A model generated the notes under the pieces. It worked only from the letters and a program-made list of their open reading frames with translations, was not told where the DNA came from and made no database searches. Positions 12,065 to 23,016 of a stretch of DNA of 64,000 nt are shown here, in pieces; the first letter of the stretch is position 1; each line of letters begins with the position of its first letter. The stretch spans positions 519,492 through 583,491 of the forward strand of contig CM074822.1 of the NCBI GenBank assembly GCA_037447605.1, in the 5' to 3' direction. The translations under genes and the position numbers were made by a program. This DNA is from Zygnema circumcarinatum SAG 698-1b. Lineage: Eukaryota > Plantae > Zygnematophyceae.

Positions 12065-12437
12065 GTCGCCAGCCGGCAACGCGTTGGCCTGCCGGCAACG
12101 AGATAGGCGCACATACCAGGAAGGTGGGCCACCTGCTGCACCAGGTGGGGGGGCACCGGCTGGGGGGTGCACTTGGGCGGTTGGGCTGTGCTGCAAGCGG
12201 GCACATTTAGGGTTAGCTTGTATGGTTTCTCCTTTTTCACTAAAACAAAACAAAAAAAGAAGGGGTGCAGAGTTTTGGAGAAGGCAGAATTGGGGGAATC
12301 TCTACCTCTCTCTCTCTCTGTCTCTTCCTCGCTCTCCCTTTCTCTCTCTCTGTCTCTTCCCCTCTCTCTCTTTCTCTCCCTCTCTCTCTCTCTCTCCCTC
12401 CCTACCTCTCCCTCTCTCTCTCTCTCTCCCTCGGATC

Positions 12438-13061
12438 ATGTGGTGGTGGCCATGGGGCGAGAGCGAGCAGGCAGAGGGCAAGAAGAAGATTGAGGAGGCG
12501 AAGCCCGCCGTTGTGAAGCTCAACCGGCAGAGCTTCAAGAGGGCTCTGTCAGTGGCGAAGGCAGCGAGCAGTAACCATGGCGAAGCTCCGGAGGTAGTGG
12601 ATGAAAGGTTTGTGTTGGACCTTTACCACGTCTTCAAGAGGTTTGATCGTGATGGAGATGGAAAGATTTCTGCAGAGGAGCTTATGGATGTGCTTGTTGA
12701 CCTCGGAGCATCGCCGTCTATGAGCGAAGTGAAGACAATGATCAGCGAATTCGACGAAGATCAGGATGGAAATCTGGATATGGAGGAGTTTGTGAAGCTG
12801 AATGTCTTGGCAGCCATAGTGCCTGATGATGTGACGGGTGAAGATGAAATCCATCAACTCTTTAAGGTGTTTGATCACAATCAGAACGGCTTGATTTGCG
12901 CTGACGAGCTCTTCAGAGTGATTAGGAGTACAGGGGAGCCTGTGACGCTGGAAGAGTGCTTAGATATGATCCGAATGGCTGACACAAACGGCGATGGCCA
13001 CATCGATGTTGAAGAGTTTCGTCGACTCATGGGCAAGCCCTTTCATGCCGCCAGCTCCTAA
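12438..13061 (+). CDS. CML: Calmodulin-like protein (CML-b), intronless, 207 aa, with N-terminal extension
   Basis: ATG 12438 (MWWWPWG...) follows a CT-rich leader. Loops DRDGDGKISAEE, DEDQDGNLDMEE, DHNQNGLICADE and DTNGDGHIDVEE. Confidence 0.92.
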   Translation: MWWWPWGESEQAEGKKKIEEAKPAVVKLNRQSFKRALSVAKAASSNHGEAPEVVDERFVLDLYHVFKRFDRDGDGKISAEELMDVLVDLGASPSMSEVKTMISEFDEDQDGNLDMEEFVKLNVLAAIVPDDVTGEDEIHQLFKVFDHNQNGLICADELFRVIRSTGEPVTLEECLDMIRMADTNGDGHIDVEEFRRLMGKPFHAASS

Positions 13062-14986: not shown

Positions 14987-16342
14987 TAAATTGCCTCGGT
15001 TCTGGCAAACCCAGATTTAGGGTTTGAAACCGACCCGAACCGGTTTCGAACTGCGCGAGACCCGGTTCGGCACGGAAAAGGGCAAACATGTACGGAGGGT
15101 CAAAACGTGAAAAAACCCTAAAACCCTAAAAAACCCAAACCCTGAAAATCCTACGAACCCAAAACAACTACAAAACGAGAAATTTGACTAAAATTTAAGG
15201 TCAGAACAAGTACTTTGTACAGCCACATTGTGAAACTAAAAAGTACTGTTTTTGAATTTATCGCATGGACGGGGAAAAAATTCCATTACGGTATCAATTT
15301 TTTCTTAACTATTTGTTCCCACGACTTTTCAACATTTACATTTAAATTTCATGTTCAAATTGAAAGCTGTCGAATCCGACAAGTACACCATACAAATTTC
15401 GTACGAAATTTGTACGGGTTTTTCTAGTAACCAAATCACCAAAGGTTTTATGCCACGTCATAAAAGTCTTCCCACGTGGCACCATTCCATTAGCCAATTT
15501 TTTTCACTAGCTGCCAAATCCAAAAAGGAGAAACCCCCATAGAATGAGCTTCATCCCAATTGCCAAATCTGTCGGCGCAAGACGACAAATGACATAAATG
15601 AACAGTAGATTCATGCCCATTTTTTGTGTCGTTACCCGCTGTACGTAACGGAACTAGTCTCGCACGTGGAATCATCACAAACGACAAAAATCGGTCCGTT
15701 TCCCTCTGCCCCGTGGCCGTTCTCAACCGCCGCACCGCCGCATTTTCCGGAGCTCTGATTTTACCACCCTATCCCATTTCTTAAATCGATTTTTTAGCAA
15801 AAACCGCAAACCGCGGGACTCCAAAAGCTCGCCCCAACTTTCCGGTTTTCGCTATGAGATTGGTTTGTCCAGCAAACTTTGCACTTGATGCCGCCATGGA
15901 GGGAGGCGTGGGAGTGGGAGAGGGGGGGGTGAGGAGCGGGAGAGGGTGAGGGAGAGGGGGAGGGTGAGGGAGAGAGGTGGGAGGCGAGGAGGCAGCCTTC
16001 ACTCTCCCAGGCTGAAGCTCAGGCTTGGAAGCTTTTTTAAGGGTTCTCAAAGAGGAGGAGCGTGCTCTGTCCTCCTCTCTCTTCTCTCTCTCTCTCTCTC
16101 TCCCTCTCTCTCTCTGGATCTTGCGAGCATTCCTCCTCTATCTCTCTCTGTTGGTTCTCTTCCTCCCTCCATTAAGTCTTTCTCTCCCTCAATTCCGCCC
16201 CTCTCTCTCTCCCTCCCTCCTCTCCTCTCTCTTCCTCCTCGCCTCCTCTTCTCTCTCCCTCCATTCCTCCTCTCTCTCCCTCCAATCCCCCTTTCTCTCT
16301 CCCCTCCCGCTCTCTCCCTCTCTCTCTCTCTCGAGCCTCCCG

Positions 16343-19300
16343 ATGACTGTCAACAGCGCTCTCGATTCCGTGTGGCGATTTGGGCGGCAGGGAAGCGCTG
16401 ACCTGCAGAGAAGCATCAAGCAGTATGTGGTGGCGGGGGCTGAAATGATGCGGAAGACGGAGCCCCTGGAAGAGCACAATGGGAAGCTTTGGGATGCTGG
16501 GAATGCAGGCGTTGCAAGGTGGCAAGTGGTGGAAAGCGGGGAAGCAGGGACTTATGCATATCAGCTTATGCTTCAAAGCAGGGCAGGGAAGATATTATCG
16601 CCATGGAATGATGTGCCCCTTTGGACCTCTGACAGGCAAAATGTGCATGTCATCTGCAAGACCCCGCGGGGGATGTGGACAGACCTCGAGGTCTCCATGG
16701 AAGGCTCGAAGCCTTCTCTCAAACTGAGAATCACTTCACAAGGAAAGCTATCGCATTATGCGTTTAATTCTCCATGGAACATCGGCATGTTGCCGCAGTC
16801 TTGGGCAGATCCTGACCTTCAAAATGCCAATTACGGAGGCCTTCCCTATGATGGGCTTCCTATGGAAGTGATAGACATAGGGTCGAGAAAGCGCTCCATT
16901 GGAGAGGTTTATACTGTGAAGATTCTGGGAGGCTTTGCGGTTGTCAATGCACAAGGCGGAGATCTCTCTTGGAAAGTCTTAGCGATAGATTTGGAAGATC
17001 AAATGGCTGGAAAACTGCAGGATGTTAAGGATGTGCATCATAATGTGCCGTACCTTCTGGAGGAGGTTCGGGAATGGCTGCGCTCCTGTCGCTGTGTTGA
17101 ACCAGGTGAAGCTTGAGCATGGCGAGGGTTTCATGTCAGAAAATGGATGCAAGATGTAGAATATGGACACCTATATATTTGGTCTTTTAAGGAGCTGACA
17201 TGGGGTCTAGGGTAAGTAGGCATTGACTTGTCATAGATTTCAAGTTTCAGGTTTCAGGTGTATTTTTTCAGTCGTGGTAGAGTTTACGGGGAAATTGAGT
17301 GTTGAAATCTCCAGATTTGTATTCTAGGTTCTTATTTTGACTATCGCCTCTCAGCAGTGTTGGTTCATAGAGAATACTGAACATGCAAAAAATGAGACAT
17401 TTTTTCAGCCTGCTTCGTTTCCTTTCTCTGATGTCCTGCCCTTTTCTTGCTGTGTGTAATCACAGAAGCAAAGGAGAACATTTTCGGTCTCAATGAACGT
17501 GCAGCAAACCGTGCATCCTTAATGAAGGTGGTAACCCAAGCTCATGCCAGCTGGCAGCAGCTAACAACTGGTAAACGCCAACATAGAGGAATGGAAAAAT
17601 CCACTTCTGCTGCTCCTTCTGCTGCTCCAATCCCACTCTCTGATCCAAATGTAGGGTCTGAATCCGAAACCTCGCCTCCTTCTCTTCCCAACGCATCTGT
17701 AAGCTCTACAGAAGATCATTTTGCTGCTATTCCTGAAGCTTTGAAGATCAAAGCGCATCTAGCAAGGCCGGCTTTCTTGGAAGCTTTGGAGCTTCAAACC
17801 AGTTATTCTATACAGTTAAAACGTGCTTTGAAATCTGCTCTGAGGACAAGTCCTCCAGACAGTGTGAGACAGGCTGCTTCCCATCTTCCTTTCACAGAGG
17901 GAGGTACAGAAAATGAGCGTTCCCGGAAGTCAGAAAAGGAGGTTATGTCCAGGAATGAGGGAGAGGGAGTCTCCAAAGAGGAGGGATTGGAAGACATTGA
18001 GAGTGGGAGGGGAGAACGGAAAGGTGGAAGTGGACCCCTTAGACCGAGAGTGACTTTTGCAGACACTCACATAGGGTCGGGACATGCAAGAAGAAAGCAT
18101 ATTTCTTTGAGTGGTGAGTTGCATCCTAAGAGAAATGCACGTTCAGAAGTTCTATCTTCTGGAGCAGTTGCATTAGAGGGAACATGGAAAACTGGCGGAA
18201 TGAATAGAGGGCCGAAAACTAGAGTTCGGCCGACAGATATAGCAATCTCAGCAGGAATGGAAGGTAGTAATGGAGAGAGGGGATTGAGAGGAGGCAGAGT
18301 ATGGCCGGCAGGGTCGAGAAATACAGCTGTAAGTGTTGGGAAATTGGAGCAAAGCAGAGGAGGAGAGAAGGTTTCTGTCGGAGGAGTTGTGGGAGGGATA
18401 AAGAGCAATGATGTGCAGATATGGCTTCGAGATCAGCTCCAAGAGCGTAGGAGAAGCGAAGGAGATGCACATTTAGATGGGCAGATGAAGGTGAATGGTG
18501 GAGGGGGGGTATTGAGAATGAGGGTGGAAGATGAGAGGAGAAGACAAAGTCAGCTTGATGGTTTGTTAGAGGAGAGGGTAATGAAAGCAGAAGCAGGAGA
18601 TAGGGAAGGGGCTTATGAGGAGGTAAGGGAAGTGCATGTTAGAGCGGATGGTGTTTGGGAAGAAGCAGAGAGACCAAGGGGTAGCACAGAGAAGGAGTGG
18701 GAAGTAGCAGAGTTTGAAGGTATACTGAGAAACAGCCAAGATTGGAGAAATGGGGAGGGAAATTTGGAGGGAGACAGTTACTCGGAACTGCATGAAAACA
18801 TTCCAGTTGCAATCGCCGTTGTTGACAACGGACACGAGCAACATGGAACGCATCCTATCGCGCAGTCGGTCAGTTTTGGTCGATATATGGTTAACCAGGG
18901 CACTACTAGGCTCGCTTGGTCGGAATCTCCCGAAACCCTCCTTGGCCCTACCGCTGTTAGAAGAATGGAGAATGTTCGATATCCCGGATCAGAAGGTGAA
19001 GAAACCGTAAGTTCAACAAATTTTTCAGCACATGATGCAGAAAATTCTATCTTTCATGAGGATGAGAGAGTCTCTGGGAGCTCAGAGTCAACTTCAAGGT
19101 TTGACCGTTCCGGAGCAGGAAGAAGAGTTTCATGGGGATGGGTGGAGGAAAGGAAGTTTCCCAGAGGGAGTGGGAGAGGGTACGAAAAGGTCAATGGGGG
19201 GGTGTTGACTTCTTCTCAGCAGCTTCCCCGACTTGCAAGGAGAGGAGGGGAAGAGAGAGATGCTGGGAAAAGGTATATGGGGGGTAATTCTCATCATGGA

Positions 19301-19495
19301 GCAGTGGGATATGGGTGGCATGCATCCCATAATGGAGGAAAGCTTCCTACAAAGTATCGATCTGAACCCCTCGGTTTGCAGCAGCTTAGTACGGAGCAAG
19401 TCATGGAACGGTTAAGTGGTCGACCTCGGAATGAAGCAGAGGCGAGAGCTGTAGCGGCTGCTTTGCAGAAACTGCGCATGCATACAAATGCATGA
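16343..19495 (+). CDS. Family-I soluble inorganic pyrophosphatase homolog, probably inactive, fused to a long low-complexity C-terminus (930 aa)
   Basis: Exons 16343-17105 and 17466-19495 (GTGAAG...CACAG, phase 1; 2793 nt). PPase scaffold motifs ILSPWNDVPL, WNIGMLPQSWADP, EVIDIG, WKVLAIDLED and VREWLR. The second exon begins with the expected PPase C-terminal helix (ENIFGLNERAANRASLMKVVTQAHASWQQL), which supports the splice. Confidence 0.85.
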
Positions 19496-21970
19496 AAGCA
19501 GAATATAACATTTGTAGCATAGAGAAGTGGGGGGCTGCAGACTCATGCCACCAACGACGGGTAATGGGTGCACAGCATATGGGTCTTGAATCTTCCATGG
19601 AGAGTTTAGGGTTGGCTCCGAGTGGAGGAGGTATGGATAGTATGGATATAGTAGGAGAAAGAAACGGTCTCTCTGTTTAAGTAGACTTTGGGTGAGTGGG
19701 AACCATCCTTACCTTGGGGCATTATCTGTCACTTTTTTAGGGTTTCGGTAGGCATAGGACGGTGCACTTGTTCTGTTCCTTCTTGGAACAAGACGAGTAG
19801 CTTTACCAAATGTGAGTGTGTGTGTGACAGAGAGAAAGAGAGTTCTTATCCTCCTTAGAACCAGACAGGTTACATAACTCTAGCAAATGAGAGATAGAAA
19901 GGGGGAGAGAGAGAGAGAAAGAGAGAGAGAGTGATGGATTTTCATTAGCGTTCCTGAAAGGAATAGAGTAGGTAACTTATTGTGGTTTTGGGTCAGTAGA
20001 TTGAAGGTGCAGGTACTTAGTTAGATGAAGCCCGGTTGGTTGGTCGACCGGGGACAACTGACTGACGGTTGTTCTTTATAGGGTTGGCTCGTTAGTTGAG
20101 CTTTGTGCTATTCTCTGTGACATTAGCCGCAGGCTGCCCTTTATTGGCTGGATGGGGTAAGCTGAATGTATTGCTCAGGTTTCTGATTGACTTCAATTAC
20201 AGACAGGGCGAGAAAGCAAAACGGTTTGTATCTTGCCGGTTTTGCTGTGTTCATTGGTTTATGTCATGGGTGCGTGGATGCCTTAAAAATCCTAAGAATT
20301 CTCGACATCCTATGGACTCTTGAAGTCTGAAAACCCGAAGAACTCCAAAAACTTAACAACCATAGAAGCCCTAAAAGCCCCCTATTGGTTTTAAAGGACA
20401 TGTCTTGTGTTCAATGCCACACAAAAGGGCTGATTTGGGTTCTCTAAGGGGCTGCCTTCTGTATGGTCCAAACCATGATGGTAATCAAGATGCGATGCGG
20501 TATCATGTGTAAAGGAACTCTACAATTCCTTCCCTACCCCCTACCTACTCTCCCACCTGGGCCCTTCCCACCCCCCTCCTTTACCTCCCCCTCCCCCAAT
20601 CGCTGTCGCTCTCTCCCTCCCTCTCTCCCCTCCCCTCCCCTCCTCTCTCCCCAATTCCTTTCCTTCCTGCCTCTCTCGCTGTCCCTCTCTCCCTCCCTCT
20701 CCCCTTCGCCCCTACGCTTTCCCAGCCTATCTCACTCCATCCCCCTTCCCCTTCCCTTCCCTCTCCGCCACCCCCCAATCTCTCGCCCTCGCCATCTCCC
20801 TTTCTCCTCTCTCCCACTCTATCCCTAAATCTTCTTCCCCCACCCCAATCTCCCCCTCTCGCTATCCCACTCTCCTTCTCCCGGTCGACCTCCGCTTTCC
20901 CTCACTATCTCTCACCCTCACCCTCCCCTTTCCCCCTACCTCTCCATCTCCCTCTCTCCTCTCGCCCTCCCCCCCGTCCCCTCTCTCCCTCTCTATCTCT
21001 CTCTCCTTCCCTCTCCCTCACCCATCCGTCCTCCCCATCCCCCCCCTCTCTCTATCCCTCTCTTTCTGTCGCTCTCGATGCAATCTCTCTTCATCGTTCT
21101 GCCTCACCCCTGAAATTAGCCTTTCCAAAAAACTACCTGCCGTTAAAAGAGCTCCCTCCCGTGAAGTTTCCATGAAAGCTGTGCCTATATCATAGAAGCT
21201 GTGCTGATACCACCAGATGTCAACTTTTAGAGAAGCCTCTTCAGCTGTGCCCATAAAGAAGCTTACTGGCAGGGCCTGCAGGGCTACAGAAGAAATGAGC
21301 TTTCCAATTACAGCGGAGGAGAAACAATGGCTTCCATAGCGAAAGCGCAAAAGTAATGAGAACAAATACTCAATTGATAGGGAAAATATAACATACAAAG
21401 AGCTATTAATGACCTCACTCTTAATGGAAGCTCACTTTCACTGCTTCCAAGAAGACTTGAGATCTTTGCTGGCTCCATTGCCAAGCACGAATAACGACTA
21501 ACTGACTAAAGTTTCACCTAATTTGACACTTAGCCACTGACTACTTCACCAAAGACAATGCTTTTGCAAAGTCCTAACGCTCAAAGCAGTAGGATTACCG
21601 CGCTACAAGAACTACTACAGGACGACTGTACAGACAGGTTAGGACTTAAAAAGGAAAAGGGAAATATGTTTGATGAAGGTCGATAATGAAGGCAGAAAAC
21701 GCCTGTGCGTTTTCATAACAAGCCACATATCGACTGCTCTCAATTATGTACTATGTGACGAAATACCGCTTGTACTACTAATACCCAGTCCTTGGGACGA
21801 ACACTATCAGAAAGAATACGCAGCATTCTATTATCAACTATCGACGGCGGCGAAGCCGAAGCCGGCGGAAAGAAGGCAGCAATGCAGGGCCGGCATTAAA
21901 AGTATCGCATGAATTTTCTATTTCCGCATATACATGCTATCGCCCTCTGCATTCTTAAAGTGAAAAGAAG

Positions 21971-22510
21971 TCAAAGTAGGGCCTTATCGCTCATCATTTT
22001 CTCGAACTCAGAGATGTCCACATTCCCATCGCCGTCCGTATCCCAACTTGCGATCATCTTCTTGCAGTCTTCTAATGACTTGTTCTTATCCCCAAATATA
22101 GACAGCACTTGATGAAGCTCCACAGGCGATATCTTCCCATCCTTGTCTAAATCAAACATTCTGAACACTGCAGCCAGATCCTCTTTAGGTTTCGAGCAAT
22201 CGATCGCCACTCGATTGAGAATCACAAACTCCTCAAAGTCCACGAACCCATCTCCATTGTAATCTATCTCATTGATAAGCTCCTGCACCGACTCCTCTGT
22301 ACAAGTCGAACTAAAGCATCGCATCATCGCCAAAAGCTCCTTCTTTGAAATCCTTCCGTCTCCGTCCGTATCATACGTTCTGAATGCATGTCGCAATCGT
22401 CTCCGCTCGCTGGGAGTCAACTCTAAGGAACCCACATTGTGGGCCCCTTTATTCATCTTCTCAGAGTGAGAGGCTCTGGGGCTTTCAGCAGCCTGCACTT
22501 CCGGGGCCAT
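21971..22510 (-). CDS. CML: Calmodulin-like protein (CML-c), intronless, 179 aa
   Basis: First ATG at 22510 (MAPEVQAAES). Loops DTDGDGRISKKE, DYNGDGFVDFEE, DLDKDGKISPVE and DTDGDGNVDISE. Telo-box AAACCCTAA at 22582-22590 upstream. Confidence 0.93.
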   Translation of the reverse strand: MAPEVQAAESPRASHSEKMNKGAHNVGSLELTPSERRRLRHAFRTYDTDGDGRISKKELLAMMRCFSSTCTEESVQELINEIDYNGDGFVDFEEFVILNRVAIDCSKPKEDLAAVFRMFDLDKDGKISPVELHQVLSIFGDKNKSLEDCKKMIASWDTDGDGNVDISEFEKMMSDKALL

Positions 22511-22984
22511 AATGCAACTAATGGGTCTGCTTAAAGACGGTCTCCTTGAGCCCCCCAAGTCCGTACAATTCAGTGCAGAGGAAACCCTAATTCGTAAGAC
22601 CCAGTCTCGCCCTTGTTCCTTGCCTTCCTTTCACTTGGCACCTATAGCTTACTGACAACCTCCCTCCCTCCCTTCCTCCCTCTCTCCCTCCCCCCCTCTC
22701 CCTCCCACTTCACCTCTCTCCCTCCCTCCCTCTCCCTCCCTCTTATCCACCTCCCTCCCCCTCTCCCACCTGCCCACACTCTCTCCCACTCCCTCCCCCT
22801 TCCTCACCTTTTCCTCCTTCCCTCTCCCTTTCCCTCTTTCACTCCCTCCCACCTTCCGCCCTCTTTCCCTCTCCCTCTCCCTCTGCGTCTCTCACTTTTC
22901 TAACCCTGCTCTCCCTCCACGGCCAGAAACTTCCACCAACGGCCTCTCTTCATAACGCGGCTTTTAGCATCCGCCAATGGCGTC

Positions 22985-23016
22985 TCGCCACGTATGCTAA
23001 TTTGCATACGTGGCGA
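22985..23016. promoter_or_regulatory. Perfect inverted pair of ABRE-like sites upstream of CML-c
   Basis: TCGCCACGTATGC-TAATTT-GCATACGTGGCGA: 13-bp perfect arms, each carrying ACGTGGC. Confidence 0.5.

Follow-up and report, generated by a model that had tools for sequence, protein, structure and literature searches.

A pyrophosphatase fold with most catalytic residues replaced and a predicted disordered tail bearing ordered short motifs in a zygnematophyte protein family

A gene of Zygnema circumcarinatum SAG 698-1b encodes a recognisable soluble inorganic pyrophosphatase (PPase) domain in which most of the active site has been replaced and which runs into a long, compositionally biased tail. 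The locus raises the question of whether such a protein is a decaying relic, an artefactual fusion of two genes or a product maintained for something other than the hydrolysis of pyrophosphate (PPi). The gene lies on the plus strand at 16343-19495 of a window of 64,000 nucleotides (nt) (assembly GCA_037447605.1, contig CM074822.1, positions 519,492 to 583,491); the window is this whole stretch, and all positions refer to it. There are two exons, and the product, here called the window protein, has 930 amino acids (aa). An earlier note on this DNA, made from the sequence alone, had described a catalytically dead family-I PPase domain fused to a disordered tail. We consider it reasonably probable that the protein is a non-catalytic PPase-fold module carried on a motif-bearing disordered scaffold. 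The main parts of the gene are as follows.

16343-17105 (+): coding part of exon 1, aa 1-254 and base 1 of codon 255; leader at the N-terminus and the greater part of the PPase fold
17106-17465 (+): intron, GT..AG, 360 nt, phase 1
17466-19495 (+): coding part of exon 2, aa 255-930 and the stop codon TGA (19493-19495); last PPase helix and the entire tail
16508-17602 (+), interrupted by the intron: pseudo-PPase fold, aa 56-300 (phmmer domain envelope)

The domain is a eukaryote-type family-I PPase by both homology and fold. Pfam family PF00719 was matched in exon 1 (E = 5e-15; score 56 bits, cut-off 23.5). The best sequence match in the PDB was 5wrt_A (E = 1.4e-25), and eukaryote-type family-I PPases, to which identity was 29-31 %, matched at E = 1e-25 to 1e-21, whereas the bacterial type reached just E = 0.008. 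A model built with AlphaFold2 (AF2) from a 66-sequence alignment of the protein's own family had a mean predicted local distance difference test score (pLDDT) of 86.5, with values above 93 at aa 61-250. Foldseek placed the PPases of T. gondii, yeast and human at the top of the matches to this model, with a root-mean-square deviation of ~1.7-2.0 Å over ~193 columns, and a query of the ESM Atlas with the domain returned canonical PPase clusters only. Sequence and structure matches thus both bear out the family-I scaffold proposed in the earlier note. The last helix of the fold (NERAANRASLMKVVTQAHASWQQL) is encoded in exon 2, and the fold therefore spans aa 56-300.

Yeast numbering was transferred to the window protein from the PDB alignment, in which query positions 66-250 correspond to chain positions 8-193 and query position 250 is yeast 193. 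Three of the 13 active-site positions are kept (E58, D115 and K154) and ten are replaced (E48K, K56D, R78S, Y93I, D117L, D120E, D147N, D152S, Y192C and K193R). The metal-binding signature D-x-D-x-x-D, formed by D115, D117 and D120, reads D-G-L-P-M-E, and all of the altered segments listed in the earlier note are present (ICKTPRG, WTDLEV, KLSHY, WNIG, YDGLPME, VNAQGGDLSWK and LRSCR). The canonical matches of the same homologue search, described below, carry 13 of 13 catalytic residues (n=50). In yeast, the variants E48D, Y93F, D115E, D117E, D120E/N and D152E have been used to probe these residues, and even conservative single changes cripple catalysis; structures of this variant series were among the Foldseek matches. 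Given that single conservative changes have such effects, hydrolysis of PPi is not expected of the window protein, in keeping with the dead domain that had been proposed. The domain may instead serve in binding or assembly, without any catalysis of its own.

When 1.84 billion cluster representatives were searched exhaustively with phmmer, 1482 matches were obtained, of which the best 150 were scored at the 13 catalytic columns. Residue counts among these best 150 were strongly bimodal, with 50 sequences carrying 13/13 and 69 sequences, all members of one degenerate clade, carrying 1-6/13. A maximum-likelihood tree built from 142 domains placed the 69 degenerate sequences, the window protein among them, in a single clade with an SH-like approximate likelihood ratio test (SH-aLRT) value of 100 and a stem of 0.54. 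The smallest clade holding the window protein consists of these 69 rows, all predicted to be dead, and the nearest relative is P0002 at 52 % identity. The nearest neighbours of the clade are canonical PPases, with weak support (SH-aLRT 82). Its proteins are often long (600-2000 aa) and fall into at least 69 clusters at 50 % identity, all without the full catalytic set.

Sources were looked up for 30 proteins, and among the source-named members the distribution was confined to zygnematophytes: Mesotaenium endlicherianum (five representatives), Closterium Yama58-4, NIES-67, -53, -54 and -64, and Netrium digitus. The two-part architecture and the intron position recur in independent transcripts and contigs (P0002, L001 and P0025). 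These observations are best explained by a single origin from a eukaryote-type family-I PPase followed by radiation within the Zygnematophyceae, which would make the family large and old. Word-index searches reached far less of it: exon 1 retrieved only a 36 %-identical canonical PPase, and the P0002 domain a single Closterium protein. Outside the clade, on a very long branch that may be a long-branch artefact, stood P0001, a 5113-aa protein from an 18.7-kb contig (NCBI source) in which 15-20 degenerate PPase-like domains follow one another in tandem. The best of these, with the pattern KKEIIDQESSKQP, has K48, E58, I93, D115, E120, S152 and K154 in common with the window protein.

Column counts over 70 degenerate and 72 active sequences showed which parts of the domain have been held. 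Degenerate and active sequences conserve the structural core equally (SPW[HN]D.PL, C.TP.G, WN.G.LPQTW, G.VY.VK.LG, WK and REW). The old active-site positions 48, 56, 78, 117 and 193, which in the enzyme serve to bind PPi or to activate water, vary across the degenerate clade, whilst others are held in either the ancestral or a substituted state: E58 in 77 %, D115 in 51 %, D120E in 74 %, D152S in 60 %, K154 in 83 % and Y192C in 61 %, with position 147 acidic in 54 %. The window protein carries this shared pocket as E116, D170, E175, S209, K211, C249 and C251. New family-specific residues stand beside it (T107, W112, P136, H138, N142, R184, Y190, F198, L246 and a second Cys), their spatial clustering being judged from adjacency to known active-site positions. 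At the Y192 column, which forms part of the following element, Cys occurs in 43 of 70 degenerate sequences and Tyr in 63 of 68 active ones.

17087-17095 (+): C249-R-C251 ('CxC'), with C249 at the Y192 position; consensus of the degenerate clade REWLRxCxC

This pocket pattern is the signature of new constraint and not of decay. It also speaks against one role suggested in the earlier note, that of a PPi or phosphate sensor: since the phosphate-binding basic residues K56, R78 and K193 are not conserved across the clade, and the general base D117 varies with them, such a role is unlikely. The search for the same substitutions and tail motifs that the note had called for found the shared pocket, and the ordered motifs described below, in other members of the family. 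Between the domain and its 52 %-identical homologue on contig L001, non-synonymous divergence (dN) was 0.40 over 196 codons, with 70 % of four-fold sites different and hence saturated. The ratio of non-synonymous to synonymous divergence (omega) is clearly below 1 for the domain, and is unquantified as synonymous divergence (dS) is saturated; no close orthologue was obtained, so the dN/dS check proposed in the note settled the direction of selection and gave no omega figure.

RNA evidence supported the gene model throughout. The joint predicted in the earlier note, between 17105 and 17466, was present as a 360-nt skip (GT..AG, cut +3) in RNA contigs of four public runs from the same organism (X1, X2, X3 and X5), with the spliced transcript at a depth of ~30-54 across the four. 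In X1, one RNA contig of 3373 nt bridges both exons at a word depth of 54 with zero mismatches. Exon 1 opens with ATG at 16343, is covered by RNA contigs over 16339-17105 in four runs and ends CAG|GTGAAG; exon 2 begins ..CACAG|AAG and is a single uninterrupted exon, a 682-codon open reading frame (ORF) with no further intron in the tail, covered continuously over 17463-19808 with zero mismatches. The frame is open across the phase-1 junction (..CRCVEP-E-AKENIFG..) through to TGA. Homology across the junction also fits the model, in that the C-terminal helix of the PPase runs on into exon 2, and the homologous gene on contig L001 has its intron at the same position. The intron was retained at ~20-45 % of the word depth of the flanking exon contigs in three runs, the fourth showing no retention; the unspliced contig, of 417 nt, had a depth of 9-13 against 27-46 on the flanking exons. 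An intron-retained form would end ..VEPGEA* and give a 257-aa protein without the last PPase helix and without the tail, and pre-mRNA, DNA carry-over or a regulated isoform are candidate sources of it. Expression, splicing at the predicted joint and purifying selection show that the locus is not a pseudogene; its product is a probable pseudoenzyme.

The tail occupies aa 301-930 and is rich in G, E, S and R (12, 11, 10 and 10 %, respectively), with balanced charges, i.e. polyampholytic. Single-sequence AF2 gave it a mean pLDDT of 40.8 with a few isolated helices. A charge-hydropathy scan (41-residue windows) scored aa 401-481, most windows of 521-701 and all of 761-881 as disordered, and stretches centred on 321-381, 501, 561 and 721-741 as ordered. 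The predicted disorder agrees with the earlier description, and the length does not quite: the tail measures ~630 aa and not ~640, the fold ending near aa 300 in exon 2. Both tail helices of that description were predicted again (aa 337-382, which is AF2 tail 82-127, and aa 911-928), but the C-terminal one had no counterpart among 43 homologous tails and so is unconserved in the relatives found. Tails across the family are essentially unalignable and range in length from <200 to >1700 aa. No Pfam family matched the tail at E up to 0.1, and a word-index search found no homologue of it. Tandem Repeats Finder (TRF) reported no tandem arrays in 17629-19888, and a tandem-repeat origin was rejected. 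A cryptic second PPase domain, considered as RRVSWG in the tail echoes the RRVEFG domain start of some paralogues, was not detected by a hidden Markov model (HMM) of the degenerate family run with --max. ESM Atlas recognition of the tail (1385) gave scores of <=0.74 to BAR-like clusters, which we treated as noise.

What the earlier note had passed over as low complexity is not featureless. Four short motifs, LSDPN, HLARPAF[FL], [DE]N[IV]PVA and [RK][RK]V[ST]WGWVEE, occur in constant order in the tails of the window protein, P0002 and the L001 gene, and in part in P0071, P0019, P0026 and P0012. Together with a second motif-like sequence and the C-terminal helix, they are placed as follows, with PP1 standing for protein phosphatase 1.

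17630-17650 (+): tail motif 1, IPLSDPN, aa 310-316; IALSDPR in P0002 and IPQSNPN in Closterium P0036/P0038
17756-17779 (+): tail motif 2, HLARPAFL, aa 352-359, within a predicted helix; RPAYF in L001
18041-18064 (+): second RVxF-like sequence, RPRVTFAD, aa 447-454; weak match to the motif HMM
18794-18811 (+): tail motif 3, ENIPVA, aa 698-703; DDIPVA in P0002, ANIPVA in P0071, ENVPMA in P0026 and GNIPVA in L001
19121-19150 (+): tail motif 4, RRVSWGWVEE, aa 807-816; RVxF-type candidate PP1 docking motif
19385-19477 (+): C-terminal helical segment, LSTEQVMERL...AAALQKLR, aa 895-925; AF2 tail 642-648 and 656-673, pLDDT 57-66

The order survives large differences in tail length. In the L001 gene the tail is only ~390 aa long and carries RPAYF, GNIPVA and RKVSWGWVEE in order, and the NIPVA-type motif lies 65-166 aa upstream of the RVxF-type motif in the four relatives that carry both. 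The second motif in its general form, [RHK]PA[FY][FLIV], was found in 8 of 70 degenerate proteins and in none of 72 active ones. Two sequences from a basal branch also have motifs, P0071 with NIPVA and RVQWGWVE and P0012 with RPAYF, and their presence there indicates that the motifs are old. P0071 aligns with the RPRVTFAD region over GSGPL.PR, without the VTF. Elsewhere in the tail, aa 463-480 (18089-18142; RRKHISLSGELHPKRNAR) resemble on inspection a bipartite nuclear localisation signal, with basic clusters ~12 residues apart.

The fourth motif agrees with the consensus by which PP1-interacting proteins dock through RVxF, [RK]-x(0,1)-[VI]-{P}-[FW], and its eight aligned family copies read [RK]-[RKQP]-V-x-[FW]-x2-3-V-x-[VE]-x-x-[FIL], with basic residues before an invariant V, an anchor that is always F or W, and S, T, Q, H, R or K at x. 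In the window protein RRVSW (aa 807-811) sits in a region of pLDDT <50. The strict RVxF expression matched 6 of the 43 tails, where shuffled sequences gave 1.2 +/- 1.0. Spacing of the type RVxF-x3-V-x-V-hydrophobic was present in P0026, P0028, P0044 and P0076, which have V-I, V-V or V-R at +6/+7. For comparison, GADD34 has KVRF at 555-558 and its phi-phi motif at V564-H565 (PMC10743859). Plants have no known homologue of PPP1R15 according to the same paper. The accessory PP1 motifs SILK and MyPhoNE were not enriched in the tails. Two further likenesses were seen. The C-terminal RPRNEAEARAVAAALQKLR (aa 910-925, 19430-19477) forms an Arg/Ala-rich helix ~105 aa past the RVxF-like motif and superficially recalls the 'RARA' region, likewise of Arg and Ala, that lies after KVRF in GADD34 (PMC10743859). 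The helix is unconserved in the relatives found, and the likeness is probably coincidental. On another tree branch, P0068 (317 aa, 6 of 13 catalytic residues) has KRQIRFSEVVVTV just ahead of its domain, an RVxF-x2-VVxV-like sequence in an independent lineage.

The mechanism that we propose from these features would run as follows. The pseudo-PPase domain would no longer hydrolyse PPi and would serve binding or assembly; the last motif, [RK][RK]V[ST][FW]-xxVx[VE]xx-hydrophobic, would be a docking site for the PP1 catalytic subunit; and the protein would be a PP1-targeting subunit to which the domain gives location, partner or ligand specificity, with the Ser/Thr within RRVS/TW as a plausible phospho-switch. 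The component steps differ in strength. The non-catalytic module on its scaffold is the part that we hold to be probable. That the tail recruits PP1 through the last motif is a tentative proposal, which may well prove wrong. More doubtful again is the full picture, in which the pseudo-PPase would be a substrate or location module, possibly sensing metal or redox state through its Cys/His/acidic pocket, and the tails would bring in PP1 through a phospho-regulatable RRV[ST][FW] motif, the whole being a signalling layer so far unseen.

Several observations weigh against these proposals. The loss of activity is read from residues, the acidic pocket residues E116, D170 and E175 remain so that binding of one metal ion is possible, and saturation of dS prevents an omega figure for the selection argument. 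The PP1 idea rests on a short and degenerate motif whose copies share descent, so that the excess over shuffled sequences reflects conservation, not independent recurrence, and the motif is present in only ~9 of 44 tails, a shortfall to which the many fragmentary representatives may contribute. The RVxWGWVE of the window subgroup is one residue shorter than the GADD34 arrangement, its downstream sequence GWVEERKFP has no clear phi-phi pair, looked for 5-8 residues after RVxF, and PP1 docking leaves the conserved GWVE unexplained. A profile search of the PDB with the motif found no PP1-binding peptide, only chance homeodomain matches at E >=0.2, and a Pfam scan of six motif regions at E up to 10 matched no family, including the PPP1R15 family PP1c_bdg.

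The alternatives differ in what they make of the pocket. A decaying pseudogene, or an artefact fusing two genes, would account for the lost catalytic residues and for a tail of biased composition without a word-index homologue in the database. The spliced transcript in four runs at a depth of ~30-54, a 2-kb exon without a stop (675 codons open), dN far below saturated dS, the repetition of architecture and intron position in P0002, L001 and P0025, and the conservation of motifs almost to the C-terminus leave this explanation next to no probability, and we regard it as refuted. The pocket might instead bind a ligand and so control the tail: E116, D170 and E175 would take up a divalent cation, or else H138, C249 and C251 would respond to a thiophilic metal or a redox signal. 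The retention of E58 (77 %), D115 (51 %) and D120E (74 %) and of an acidic residue at position 147 (54 %) would suit such a sensor, as would the conserved H138 by the R78 position, C249 at the Y192 position and C251, predicted to lie at the former P1 phosphate subsite. However, K56, R78 and K193, which hold PPi and phosphate (Pi), are not conserved, making a PPi or phosphate ligand unlikely, and the closeness of the Cys and His residues in space is judged from their adjacency in sequence. We consider the sensor unlikely.

Less probable still is that the domain heterodimerises with a canonical family-I PPase and tethers or inhibits the active enzyme. Such a partner would be in keeping with the homodimeric state of eukaryotic family-I PPases, with the strong conservation of the fold core and with the position of canonical PPases as the nearest tree neighbours of the clade (SH-aLRT 82); tens of divergent paralogues in each genome, their tails differing, are nevertheless hard to reconcile with one housekeeping enzyme, and the N-terminus counts against this pairing, bearing acidic residues on inspection and looking unlike a plastid transit peptide. 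A change of catalysis, in which the pocket has gained another hydrolytic or transfer activity using its conserved Cys, Ser and Lys, appears to us very unlikely. S209, K211, C249 and C251 are indeed conserved at the old active site, but no known catalytic motif is present (CX5R is absent, and the consensus is C.C...G), the general base and most of the metal ligands are gone, and too many pocket positions vary freely for a tuned active site. The non-catalytic module on a motif-bearing scaffold remains the reading that we prefer.

Ahead of the fold, aa 11-18 (16373-16396) read WRFGRQGS, with the counterpart YRLGRQGS in P0002. This sequence fits a basophilic kinase site of the CDPK/SnRK type (hydrophobic at -5, R at -3, then S) and lies in a predicted helix of low confidence.

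Two further features lie in the flanking DNA.

16075-16332 (+): CT-rich low-complexity tract, 5' untranslated region (UTR) or promoter; TRF arrays of CT and of CT-rich 21-71-nt periods
19496-20222 (+): 3' UTR, with RNA contigs up to 19808 and then from 19942 to ~20222

The X1 RNA contig extends 141 nt further 5' of 16339, in skipped repeats. A GA/G-rich block of GGGAGA-type repeats at 15899-15989 lies within 100 nt of the CT-rich block, giving mirror purine/pyrimidine tracts by the ATG, and CT-rich blocks of a similar kind occur again at ~20500-21000 and ~22500-23000. In the 3' UTR, the gap in RNA contigs at 19809-19941 falls on (GT)n/(GA)n low complexity, with (GA)n reported by TRF at 19889-19931. 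An intron there was rejected, as low complexity breaks k-mer contigs and the borders fit GT..AG poorly. ORFs for calmodulin-like proteins with four EF-hands lie on both flanks of the gene, at 12084-13058 (+) and 21974-22558 (-), with Pfam EF-hand_7 matches at E = 1e-30 and 5e-32; this is neighbourhood alone, with no link to the pseudo-PPase shown.

In the 8.4 million full texts searched, we found neither a PPase-derived pseudoenzyme nor this family described, and nothing on PF00719 in Zygnema. The architecture that the earlier note could not place is thus apparently undescribed in that literature, although it is no isolated oddity and belongs to what appears to be a large and old zygnematophyte family of 69 cluster representatives. 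The Zygnema genome paper lists 'pyrophosphatase activity' among the Gene Ontology (GO) terms enriched in zygnematophyte-specific orthogroups (PMC11096116), and the supplements searched make no mention of the family. This enrichment may be the pseudo-PPase family, mis-described by its Pfam domain; a PP1-delivering pseudo-PPase layer, if true, may be what underlies the term. If the orthogroups of PMC11096116 are this family, the annotation is misleading, since PPi hydrolysis is not expected of its members. Pseudoenzymes are recognised regulators, and no soluble-PPase-derived example was found described in the literature searched. This one has branched into dozens of divergent lineages, with numerous paralogues in each genome, and to date has turned up only among the algae that form the sister lineage of land plants, a group actively examined for signalling innovations of its own. 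The ordered tail motifs, the RVxF-type one above all, turn a disordered tail of no known role into a testable hypothesis of PP1 recruitment.

Set against known systems, the window protein shares its fold, an OB-like barrel, and its descent with yeast IPP1, human PPA1 and T. gondii PPase (PF00719, EC 3.6.1.1), with the core motifs SPW[HN]D.PL, LPQTW and WK kept, yet lacks the catalytic set by which that family is defined. To canonical family-I PPases it adds a leader of ~55 aa and the disordered tail of ~630 aa. The acidocalcisomal or vacuolar soluble PPases of trypanosomatids (PDB 5cuu and 5cuy) likewise combine the family-I fold with an extra region; they keep their catalytic residues and are active, however, and their extension is a folded N-terminal EF-hand domain, unlike the C-terminal disordered tail seen here. 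With PPP1R15A/GADD34 the likeness lies in a basic-V-x-[FW] sequence that sits in a disordered stretch and has acidic or beta-branched residues after it, and the GADD34 spacing is found in four family members. Among pseudophosphatases, STYX and the inactive D2 domains of receptor tyrosine phosphatases keep the fold, have a dismantled site and have taken on a binding or scaffolding role. The likeness of the pseudo-PPase family to these is conceptual, a conserved fold with a site predicted to be dead under selection, reached here from a different fold and a different ancestry.

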